Shown piece by piece: positions 15,774 to 20,480 of a stretch of DNA of 64,000 nt. Every line of letters starts with the position of its first letter. Position 1 is the first letter of the stretch. The notes under the pieces were generated by a model. It ran no database searches, was not told the origin of the DNA, and saw only the letters and a program-made list of their open reading frames with translations. The DNA comes from Utricularia gibba (Eukaryota; Plantae; Magnoliophyta), in NCBI GenBank assembly GCA_002189035.1, contig CM007989.1:1178001-1242000 (forward strand), read 5' to 3'. Both the position numbers and the translations under genes were made by a program.

Positions 15774-16917
<1,144 letters not shown>

Positions 16918-17190: not shown

Positions 17191-17614
17191 TCAGGTCTCT
17201 CCCGCTTGAAGAACCTGCCAGAGCGTGGTCGCGACCTCTCGCACAGTCATATTGAACTCGATCTCCATCTGCAGAAACAGTTGGAAGAACACAATGCTAA
17301 TGTTATTACCATGACTTCACTCAGTTCAACCTAAAGTAAACAACCTCAGCAATGAGAGTGATGTCAAGTGCAGAGTTCCCAAATGGGGTGACGTTGGTGT
17401 TCACAACCACCATGTTCAAGCTCTCCACTTTGCTGAGCATCCTCGCGAGAATGCCCTTCTGTTTCCCACAGTGAACTCTTATAAGAATGTTGTCGTTCAT
17501 GGCTCTGGCCTCAATCTCCGGCATCGTCTCCTCCGCGCTGCCCGCCTTCTCCCCCGTAGAACCCTCCCCCTTCATTACGATCTTCGACTTCCGAATGACG
17601 ACACTGGACTCCAT
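17191..17614 (-). CDS. ACT-like-domain-only protein (115 aa) derived from a group IVa bHLH, lacking the bHLH; exons 17614-17345, 17268-17191
   Basis: MESSVVIRKSKIV...PEIEAR...LIRVHCGKQKGIL...VVNTNVTPFGNSALDITLIAE|MEIEFNMTVREVATTLWQVLQAGET*; same phase-0 intron as the neighbouring bHLH; in-frame TAA upstream and TATAAAA at 17679-17673. Confidence 0.75.
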
Positions 17615-19210
17615 CCTACTGCAGATGCTCCTCCCTCTTAGTCTTCTTCCCCGCACCGGTGGAGGTTGCTGGTTTTATACACACAGGTTTACGCATTTCA
17701 GGAAGTTTGCCTCCTCTGCTTTCCACTAGCTACTGCTCACATGAGAAAAAAGGTGAGAGCATGTGGGAATCGGGTTCCTTTCCTTCTTGAAGCCATGCCC
17801 AAAGAATGTAACACGAGGACACACATTTTTGCCCCAAAGTAAACACTCCACACTTGGTTTTATGCCCGTTAATTACTATTAATACTGCAAGTTTTTATTA
17901 CAGTTATTACATCCGTTAATGATTTAGTTACCGTAAAAAAAAGGAGGAGACGATATTTGATTTTTTTTCAATATTTGTATATTTTCTTCGAAAATTCTTA
18001 CTTTTAGCAATTAAATATTGACATATTTTGGACCACAGTGAGCCTACGCTTTACTTGCAGGATAAATATGCTTTTAAAAGTAAGGTTTTGTTTGAAATAT
18101 TTTATCTTTCTGAAAAAGTGATATATAAATAATTTTATTATTGAATAATACAAGTTTTTTATTAAAAAAATAAAAGCAGTTATTATTTTCAAAAAATTAT
18201 AAAAATTCAATTATTTTATTCCTCATAAAATATTTTTCGAGAGACGGAATCAAACAACGTCTCAAAATTAATCAAATAGTGAACATTCAAAGCATAAATA
18301 ACTATGAAATTGTTCTTTGGTTAGCCTAATTAACTTAAAATTATTAAAGTAGGATTTAACTAAAATTAATATAATAATTTAGTATTTTCTCTATAGAAAT
18401 GATAAATAAATTTTCCCAACTTCAATAGCCTTGTTTATGAAGGTGGTGTTTATCAAGATCGAATAATGTTGTTTATGAGATTTAAAAAATAGTAGAACTT
18501 AATTAAATAATTAAATTTTAAAATTTGATTATTCAATAAAAATATAGTGCATAATTTTAAATAATACCATATTGTTTAAAATAAAGAAAACCAACTTGGG
18601 AGGTGAGCCCTCGTGATTCTAAAATTTAAATTAGAATTTTATTTTAAATTGTTTGAAATTAGAAATAAAAGTTTGGAAGGACCAAATTATTCAATTTACC
18701 ACCTTCATGGTGCCTAGGTTTTATAGGGGTATAGGTGTAAATTGACAGGAGTGGAATTTCTGGGAAAATAATAATAAAATCTATATTAATTCCATTTTTT
18801 AATACAAAACGTGACAGTAAGCTTTGATTTTGATTTTTTTTAAGGTGCGAAAAATATTATGGGATCCGACTCCGAAAGTAGGGCGGGCCCTACCATGATT
18901 TCCGGTCGACGGCGCGGATAAGACGGCGGTTTAGCACGGCCGGCGCGGTTACTTTAATAAATGTTTTATCACTGCCCGTATGTAAACCTTTAGTTCTTTT
19001 TCGTGAGATGTGTGTCTTTATATAAAGAAGCGAAAAAAAAGGGAATGTTTTTCTTCACACGGCGCCAATTAGTGTCAATATTTCGTCTCTGTTCAGGGAT
19101 AGCTGTCTTCCCGGTGAGCTCCTTGAGTCTGAGCTGGAGGACGGTGCTTTTTTTCTGATTGCATGCATGACTGGGTGGTGTTTGTTGTGGCTTTCTTAGG
19201 TTTGCGGAGC

Positions 19211-20480
19211 ATGTATCCTGAAAATTTGAGTGATTTTATGGATTCCCTGTACGACGAAGACCTCGACGCGGCGGCGTTCGGGCAAGACATACACAATTAC
19301 TTGTCTCATCCAGGCAATTCTGTGATCAGCAGCACTACCGGAAGCAGCTCGATTGCTTCATGGTTTGGTTCCCCCGTGGTGGATGATCCCACCAAACATT
19401 GCATCATCCCGCCTGAGTTTGCGTTTGCCGGTGCACCGGAAAACCCCCTCAGGTAGTCTGGAACACTTGAATTCGGCATTGGTTGATTTTGGAATCTGAT
19501 TGTGGTTGGTTTAGGGGGGTATACTTCCAATCAACACCGAGAATCCGGCACAAGCTTATGAAGATGGGGGTTTCGAAGAAGCCCCGAGTCTGCCAAAGAG
19601 ACGAACCCGGACGCGGCCGCCGTCACAAACCCACGCCCACATCATGGCAGAGAGGCGGCGACGCGAGCAGCTCAGCCAGCTCTTCATCGCCCTCTCGGCC
19701 CTCATCCCCGGCCTTAAAAAGGTACAAAGTGTTAAGTTGATAAAGGTTTTCTGTTACCAAGATGATGAATAGTGTGGTGGGGCAAAAGGATCCTGGTAAC
19801 CATATCCATGTTTATCAGCCTCATTTTGAATCCATTTTACCGTAGATGCTACTGCTTTTCTCGTGAATTCGATCCCAAATCATACGCTCCAGAACATTTT
19901 TCATGGCAACCATACCATGTACACAGATAAATGTTCAAGCCTCCAATCTCACATTTGTCTTGTTTTAGATGGACAAAAGTTCGGTTCTTGAGGATGCCAT
20001 AAAGCACATGAAGCAGCTGCAGGAGAGGGTTAAGAAGCTAGAGGAGATGGCTGAAAGACGATCCATGGAGTCCGTGATCATCGTGAAGAGGTCTCAAATA
20101 GTGGTAGGCGATGAAGAAGAGAACGGGGATGAAAACAATGGAGTCGAGGAGCGAACACTCCCGGAGATCGAAGCTCGAGTGTGTGACAACCGCATGTTGC
20201 TCCGGGTGCAATGTGAGAAACACAAAGGGATCCTCGCCAACCTCCTCTCCAAGATCGAAAGCCTCGGAGTAATCGTCGTGAATACGAACGCTACTCCGTT
20301 CGGAGACATCGCCCTCGACATCACCATCGTAGCCGAGGTAAAGCAACACATCAACAACATTTTGAACCACATTATGATATGTGAATAGGGTTTTCATTGT
20401 TTCTCGTTTTTCAGGTGGAGAAAGAGCTCAACTTGACCGCAAGCCAAGTTGTCGCGGTGGTTCGAGAAGCTCTCCGGTGA
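19211..20480 (+). CDS. Group IVa bHLH transcription factor (bHLH18/19/20/25-like) with C-terminal ACT-like domain; exons about 19211-19452, 19515-19721, 19969-20337, 20415-20480; first junction needs a 1-nt correction
   Basis: Basic region RPPSQTHAHIMAERRRREQLSQLFIALSALIPGLKK|MDKSSVLEDAIKHMKQLQERVKKLEE, then LPEIEARV...ALDITIVAE|VEKEL; the start codon and exon 1 are less certain. Confidence 0.88.

Follow-up and report, generated by a model that had tools for sequence, protein, structure and literature searches.

A candidate ACT-only gene derived from a group-IVa bHLH factor beside an intact paralogue in Utricularia gibba

The stretch of Utricularia gibba DNA analyzed here (the window: 64,000 nucleotides (nt), positions 1,178,001 to 1,242,000 of contig CM007989.1, assembly GCA_002189035.1) carries on its minus strand an intact two-exon open reading frame (ORF) of 115 codons, whose translation comprises only the ACT-like part of a protein of the bHLH (basic helix-loop-helix) type from plants. 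The ORF stands head-to-head with a full-length bHLH gene of group IVa. All coordinates are those of the window unless a contig is named, and searches, family scans and codon analyses were run exon by exon. The ORF, the elements upstream of it and the neighbouring gene are as follows:

17614..17345, minus strand: exon 1 of the ACT-only ORF, 90 codons, from MES to IAE
17344..17269, minus strand: intron of the ORF, 76 nt, GT..AG, phase 0, at the position of the conserved last intron of group-IVa genes
17268..17191, minus strand: exon 2 of the ORF, 25 codons plus TGA (17193-17191), which would encode the last helix of the ACT-like fold
17679..17673, minus strand: TATAAAA, by its sequence a candidate promoter element, with 58 nt between it and the ATG
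17677-17675, minus strand: in-frame TAA, inside TATAAAA and 21 codons 5' of the ATG
17738..17743, plus strand: CACATG box
17760-17765, minus strand: CACATG box, within the conserved block 17755..17827
17827..17755, minus strand: conserved non-coding block with the core CCCGATTCCCACATG, including the E-box at 17760-17765, 144 nt upstream of the ATG
17860..18850, no strand: AT-rich stretch (about 1 kb, GC 21-30%) that separates the conserved block from the promoter of the neighbour
19211..20480, plus strand: neighbouring full-length group-IVa bHLH gene (clade B, see below), head-to-head with the ORF
19969-20337, plus strand: part of the neighbour with helix 2, zipper and ACT
20415-20480, plus strand: last exon of the neighbour

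A sequence-only reading of this stretch had proposed a two-exon, 115-residue, ACT-only ORF starting at the MES motif, and such an ORF is present exactly where it was placed. Exon 1 matches the plant bHLH ACT-like domain (Pfam PF22754) over profile positions 2-55 of 75 with 29.9 bits (E 6.6e-7), above the gathering score of 27.6 bits. Its overall identity to the neighbouring bHLH is 55% (BLASTP E 1e-35), and the 38 identical residues first counted by hand among the 59 of the ACT-like core were exact on recount. The claim that both genes have their last intron at one position and in one phase was likewise borne out, as the last intron of the neighbour (20338-20414, 77 nt) falls at the homologous codon boundary in phase 0. 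The HLH of the neighbour is itself split by an intron, and together with the last intron at this boundary this agrees with the four exons and three introns that are the norm in subclade IVa (PMC7901066). Exon 2 and the last exon of the clade A genes introduced below are homologous and have the motif T-V-x-E-V/I-A in common; exon 2 also matches an exon of a truncated copy called L002 at a BLASTP E of 8e-4. The start methionine corresponds to an internal Met that most full-length group-IVa proteins in the alignment conserve. The start codon has an A at -3 and a G at +4, and no ATG lies between TATAAAA and the start.

The ORF has the ACT-like domain of subclade IVa, which phylogeny places inside the Lamiales IVa clade A, and the conserved phase-0 last intron; the basic region and HLH of a subclade IVa bHLH are missing, and neither the ORF nor the 1.6 kb 5' of it gave an HLH match. 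The ORF also fits the description of a trans-type microProtein, i.e., a small protein with a single interaction domain and related to larger multi-domain proteins: its 115 residues hold the ACT-like domain alone, and most of its closest relatives are bHLH proteins of 286-367 residues. Judged by domain content, intron and phylogeny, the ORF is what remains of a group-IVa bHLH that has lost its DNA-binding part and kept only the ACT-like one.

A word-indexed database search with exon 1 returned only two short ORFs from public read assemblies, both closer to the ORF than the neighbour is, while an exhaustive phmmer search returned 736 relatives. No database match of exon 1 exceeds 71% identity. 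The closest relatives are mostly full-length Lamiales bHLHs, plus a few truncated copies or models. Those of clade A include Paulownia fortunei Pfo_008532 (341 residues), Buddleja alternifolia BUALT_Bualt04G0094000 (295 residues, 71% identity), Phtheirospermum japonicum bHLH19, Castilleja foliolosa CASFOL_037157, and proteins of Sesamum and Striga, and exon 1 is 66-71% identical to its clade A orthologues. In a maximum-likelihood tree of the ACT part, the ORF lies inside clade A (support 97/95), and the neighbour groups with Rehmannia DH2020_016035 and Castilleja CASFOL_037155 in another clade, B (97/98). Additionally, neither the intron of the ORF, nor the 96 nt upstream, nor the 3' flank shows similarity to the neighbour beyond that of shuffled controls. 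The tree and the lack of intron and flank similarity rule out a recent duplication from the neighbour, and the ORF is therefore better described as a truncated old paralogue than as a trimmed or inverted copy of the neighbour. Thus, the sequence-only reading erred in taking the neighbour for the parent and the ORF for its inverted duplicate. On these comparisons of sequence, clade A is an old Lamiales paralogue lineage of group IVa, bHLH18/19/NAI1-like, and the neighbour is not the parent. Genes of clades A and B also adjoin in Castilleja, and in Sesamum the clade A gene adjoins a gene that resembles clade B (it is 61% identical to the Rehmannia B protein and stands outside the tree). The order and orientation of A and B genes vary among Castilleja, Sesamum and the window.

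The conserved block upstream of the ORF (17827-17755) has a counterpart within intron 2 of a clade A copy, L001, with an identity of about 70% (blastn E 3.5e-5). Intron 2 likewise carries this block in the clade A genes of Paulownia, Sesamum, Phtheirospermum and Castilleja (E 9e-20 to 6e-8). These orthologous blocks lie 150-215 nt upstream of exon 3. A profile made from the orthologues only, i.e., with no window sequence in it, has a single match in the 64-kb window, and this match is the block itself on the same strand (E 2e-4). A known RNA was also considered for the block and rejected, as no Rfam family matches the region. By its position and its match to the orthologues, the DNA next to the ORF on its 5' side was once intron 2 of a full-length ancestor and has retained the conserved element.

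Across Lamiales families, intron 2 of clade A genes carries two similar conserved motifs, CGATTCCCACATGC and CGATTTTCACATGC, about 100 nt apart, and a weak copy of these motifs is present in a Castilleja clade B intron. The clade A introns 2 with both motifs are:

L011:10760-11068
L012:10740-11017
L009:10615-10879
L008:11040-11268

The TATAAAA, the in-frame stop and the E-boxes (CACATG at 17738 and 17760) pointed out earlier are all present at the coordinates given for them. The E-box at 17760 sits in the orthologue-conserved block. CACATG is not enriched across the whole window (29 found, 32 expected); the meaning of the E-boxes is limited to the conservation of this one box and does not extend to enrichment. 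For the second box (17738), one alignment puts it opposite the second, CGATTTTCACATGC-like motif of the orthologous introns, a motif with no significant match in the window.

The homology of the ORF to full-length genes ends at its start codon. When exon 3 of the orthologues was made into a DNA profile, the alignment of this profile to the window began 1 nt 5' of the ATG and ran as far as the donor site (E 1e-56); the first 98 positions of the profile, which correspond to helix 2 and the zipper, have no counterpart in the window. A helix-2 remnant 5' of the ATG was considered, as TATAAAAC and GATAAAAC of the T-D-K codons face each other on visual inspection and in a single MAFFT alignment, and it is not claimed. 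TATAAAA, too, falls opposite these codons of the lost helix-2 exon in one alignment, a similarity without significance. Local alignments of the 143 nt between block and ATG with seven helix-2/zipper coding sequences (six from clade A, one from clade B) did not score above dinucleotide shuffles, with the Sesamum sequence as a marginal exception (26 of 500 shuffles score as high), and the stop of the exon 3 profile at the ATG also argues against such a remnant. Further upstream, it had been claimed that the 1.6-kb gap to the neighbour holds no basic or HLH exon. This agrees with our searches, in which no exon for the basic region and helix 1 or for helix 2 was detectable in 17615-19210, either by tblastn with the exons of the neighbour and the orthologues or with DNA profiles of the orthologous exons, and the gap contains no N runs. 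The AT-rich block 17860..18850 sits where exons 1 and 2 of the ancestor would be expected; no bHLH remnant was found within it, it shows weak inverted repeats only (17911-17942 and 18834-18865), and it may be an inserted element at the place of these exons. A basic-region relic was also tried and rejected: the peptide KKHRPPAQT (19152-19126, minus strand) matches at an E of about 0.1, and the DNA profile of the basic/helix-1 exon finds nothing. This peptide is similar to KK(R)TRPPSQT, the motif found before the basic region in IVa bHLHs, and it overlaps the 5' region of the neighbour.

Selection was estimated with a custom-written branch model (GY94/F3x4) on exon 1 only (94 codons, 10 sequences). 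When a single ratio of nonsynonymous to synonymous rates (dN/dS, omega) was fitted to all branches, omega was 0.17. On the terminal branch of the ORF omega is 0.028, as low as for the intact neighbour (0.032), so that dN/dS, which had been proposed earlier as a check, is not near 1. Omega = 1 was rejected for both the ORF (twice the log-likelihood difference 59.5, p 1e-14; 95% upper bound of omega about 0.09) and the neighbour (p 1.6e-15). It was also rejected for L002 (omega 0.28, p 9e-4), and L001, a copy with a nonsense codon, has an omega of 1.6 that does not differ from 1. In the protein tree, the end branch of the ORF (0.26) compares with 0.40 for the neighbour. The ORF, its ATG and both splice sites are intact. 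From a rough count of disabling targets (345 coding nt, start codon, splice sites), any neutral phase was shorter than 0.04-0.10 substitutions per site, and the branch-model bound limits it to at most about 9% of the terminal branch. Neither an omega near 1 nor disabling mutations, as would mark a pseudogene fragment, were found, a result with which a very recent truncation is compatible. According to the codon comparisons, the coding sequence of the ORF is under strong purifying selection, and a long-dead pseudogene is excluded by the same estimates. The earlier idea of a duplicate that lost DNA binding and was kept is thus upheld in the loss of the DNA-binding part and in the purifying selection, but not in the copying and inverting of the neighbour.

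L001 (L001:1166-1261 and 1262-1537) is a clade A copy near the Paulownia gene, with a synonymous divergence (dS) of about 0.13. Its basic/helix-1 and helix-2 exons are intact, and a TAA nonsense codon stands between zipper and Met. Because of this codon and the omega of about 1.6 in its ACT part, L001 is probably a young pseudogene.

Truncated genes analogous to the ORF were found elsewhere, and these comparative data suggest the same outcome in other lineages. In L002-L007, which represent six samples from a single species, the remnant of helix 2 contains two stops and precedes an ACT ORF that starts at the homologous Met and has a conserved exon 2. Variable sites among them number 2 of 327 in the exons, both synonymous, versus 64 of 1677 in non-coding DNA (p 0.001); as the contigs were retrieved by identical protein sequence, this comparison is biased for exon 1, but not for exon 2. 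For constraint we therefore rely on exon 2, which lies outside the look-up, and on the single-member cluster of the L002-type ACT protein, which has one variant across 17 contigs. In L014 and L015, decayed helix 2 with a stop is followed by a 115-residue ACT-only ORF from the homologous Met, here in a different IVa clade. Since these contigs are spliced, they are most simply read as RNA assemblies. A 122-residue ACT-only model of Jatropha curcas is annotated as "bHLH18-like" in RefSeq (XP_012087468.1). Castilleja CASFOL_037156 (142 residues) and a 145-residue gene of Sesamum latifolium have a common architecture of helix 2, zipper and ACT with the motif YLEYLQ, each stands head-to-head upstream of a clade A gene, and dN/dS between the two is 0.22. 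The coordinates of these ORFs are:

L014:328-675, spliced contig: 115-residue ACT-only ORF (P0038)
L015:318-665, spliced contig from a second sequencing run: the same ORF
L013:1053-1400, spliced contig from a third sequencing run: the same ORF
L008:6298-6944, minus strand: short helix-2, zipper and ACT gene CASFOL_037156
L012:2513-3038, minus strand: short helix-2, zipper and ACT gene of Sesamum latifolium

In L013 the ACT-only ORF follows a complete GINS/PSF3 ORF, an arrangement suggestive of read-through or of a chimeric assembly. About 0.9 kb upstream of the short Sesamum gene, near L012:3920-3988, there is a degenerate remnant of the basic region and helix 1, ERKRAVQQLLLPVLSAIVGLEK.

Our favoured explanation, to which we give a probability of roughly 0.5, is that the ORF is a functional ACT-only derivative of a clade A bHLH. 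A clade A bHLH would have lost its N-terminal exon, its basic/helix-1 exon and the coding part for helix 2 and zipper in the lineage of the window. The remainder would be a protein of 115 residues, i.e., a short linker and a complete ACT-like dimerisation domain, that starts at a formerly internal Met, and the former intron 2 with its conserved element now lies directly upstream. We infer that transcription of the ORF starts from this ex-intronic region, and that its ACT-like domain pairs with the ACT-like domains of full-length IVa bHLHs, e.g., the clade B neighbour. Such pairing could alter the dimerisation, partner choice or DNA binding of IVa factors in a microProtein-like manner, and whether they would be repressed or activated is not predictable. 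Among isolated ACT-like domains of maize, those with robust homodimerisation in yeast two-hybrid assays came from subfamilies III(d+e), IIIf and IVa (PMC8202348), and the bHLH ACT-like domain has been given a role in partner specificity (PMC8892516; PMC13640561). Plant bHLHs have dimerisation modules in their ACT-like domains, so that such a domain of the IVa type, when free, could pair with the one in full-length IVa factors. A literature search returned no paper that links microProtein, ACT domain and bHLH.

Several points weigh against this explanation. The ORF is known here from genomic sequence, and its spliced 115-residue model was assessed exon by exon. Exon 2 is diverged, with about 12 of 25 residues unlike the usual clade A residues (hand count). 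The omega values are rough because synonymous sites are saturated, dS being 1.4-4 between the ORF and other Lamiales clade A genes and 0.4-0.7 among those other genes. Additionally, the low omega covers the terminal branch in its entire length, and the greater part of this long branch possibly predates the truncation. L001 serves as a control in that broken clade A copies can simply decay. The search for analogues was subject to ascertainment bias, as its query finds intact ORFs only; the analogues therefore show that truncated copies exist and may be expressed or constrained, and not how frequently they survive. The absence of transcripts is uninformative either way, because the database holds no close relative (the best match of the WDR5A-like gene described below is 83%).

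The main rival, which we regard as possible and less probable than a functional derivative, is that the ORF is a recent relic: deletions and an insertion in a rearranging tandem IVa cluster would have left the ACT half as a young non-functional fragment, too recent for disabling mutations. The varying order and orientation of A and B genes in Castilleja, Sesamum and the window points to such a rearranging cluster, and the AT-rich block of about 1 kb stands at the expected place of exons 1-2. That no decayed basic/helix-1 or helix-2 remnant is recognisable fits physical deletion better than slow decay, the broken copy L001 decays at an omega of about 1.6, and the branch omega cannot split the time before truncation from the time after it. 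However, a recent relic needs at least two separate losses, one on each side of the retained intron-2 element, and one of these losses would have to stop no more than 20 nt from the conserved Met. Both the two losses and the end of homology exactly at the start codon argue against a recent truncation, and so does the retained block, which is still about 70% identical to its orthologues although neutral sites are saturated. The neutral phase would also have to fit within the limits given above (<0.04-0.10 substitutions per site and at most about 9% of the branch).

A wider reading would hold that ACT-only proteins arose repeatedly from IVa bHLH genes in flowering plants, always at the same internal Met, and that the intron-2 element is an internal promoter which yields ACT-only or helix-2+ACT isoforms from intact genes. 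The examples behind it are the window ORF, the species of L002, the spliced L014/L015 transcripts and the Jatropha RefSeq model, and we consider it doubtful. If it is true, ACT-only modulators would be a regular, overlooked layer of IVa bHLH regulation.

It is improbable that the gene model is wrong and that the ORF belongs to a longer transcript with missed 5' exons, whether diverged or not of bHLH type, lost in assembly, or joined through a CTGCAG acceptor near the ATG. An acceptor-like CTGCAG does lie 5 nt upstream of the ATG, the frame extends 14 codons upstream to a GTG, and the peptide KKHRPPAQT gives a weak match. Against these stand the in-frame TAA 21 codons upstream of the ATG and the gap of 1.6 kb, which is without N runs and without HLH-like coding sequence by peptide or DNA profile. 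Moreover, the orthologues have no intron at the point equivalent to the ATG, and the DNA beyond 19000 is taken by the promoter and gene of the neighbour. Finally, that the upstream element serves the clade B gene as regulatory DNA or as a divergent non-coding transcript, the ORF being irrelevant, agrees with the position of the block in the intergenic DNA common to both genes, 1.4 kb upstream of the ATG of the neighbour, but it leaves the codon constraint of the ORF (omega 0.03, saturated synonymous sites) and its kept splice sites and frame unexplained and is very unlikely.

With regard to the surroundings, a WDR5A-like gene (15813-16917, plus strand) converges on the ORF, with the two stop codons 274 nt apart. 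Its best identities are 83% (Salvia) and 82% (Rehmannia DH2020_016027), and the latter gene is eight locus tags from the Rehmannia clade B bHLH, which indicates that the synteny is old. As the best match of this gene is just 83%, the species of the window represents a fast-evolving Lamiales lineage without a close relative in the collections. In the neighbouring bHLH, the boundaries of intron 1 are ambiguous: of the canonical pairings open to the good donor CAG|GTAGTC at 19453, the only one that keeps the frame takes its acceptor before 19589, and its use would make exon 2 unusually short. Two database proteins, P0003 (459 residues) and P0004 (840 residues), have two ACT-like domains each and look like annotation fusions of tandem IVa genes.

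Subclade IVa regulates specialised metabolism and the formation of endoplasmic reticulum bodies in other plants. Its saponin and iridoid regulators have been covered previously (PMC7901066). The locus described here is a natural experiment in which an ACT-only copy stands beside an intact paralogue in one genome; if the ORF is silent, it is an ordinary gene fragment in a birth-and-death cluster. Compared with full-length IVa factors (Arabidopsis bHLH18/19/20-NAI1/25, TSAR/BIS, Pfo_008532, BUALT_Bualt04G0094000 and CASFOL_037157), the ORF has the same ACT-like domain, last intron, intron-2 element and Met position, but not the N-terminal region, basic region, helix 1, helix 2 and zipper. As it is without basic region and HLH, its product could neither bind DNA nor use the HLH interface.

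Interaction-domain-only small proteins are a known means of tuning transcription factors. Atypical HLH proteins of the PRE/KIDARI/IBH1 type and animal Id are small bHLH relatives without DNA binding that pair with full-length factors. These keep the HLH interface, whereas the window ORF keeps the C-terminal ACT-like domain only, and to our knowledge the bHLH examples of interaction-domain-only proteins all keep the HLH. If the favoured explanation is true, bHLH dimers would be open to a second and independent kind of control, by a modulator that uses the ACT-like domain at the C-terminus. In LITTLE ZIPPER/HD-ZIPIII, a small microProtein with a single interaction domain is derived from the family that it targets, and feedback by the target family is possible. 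The window ORF, a candidate of this kind by its sequence, differs in the type of domain. IVa members without a basic region have been reported, namely GmbHLH105/106 and LjbHLH021 (PMC7901066). Like these, CASFOL_037156 and the Sesamum gene at L012 2513-3038, the ORF is a DNA-binding-deficient derivative in a IVa cluster; unlike them, it starts after the zipper, whereas helix 2 and zipper, or the HLH as a whole, are kept in the others. The ACR proteins of plants, stand-alone ACT-repeat proteins which have been proposed as the source of the bHLH ACT-like domain (PMC10175843), also have the ACT fold without a DNA-binding domain. However, ACR proteins contain several ACT repeats and are not derived from bHLH genes, while the window ORF is a secondary loss product of a bHLH gene.

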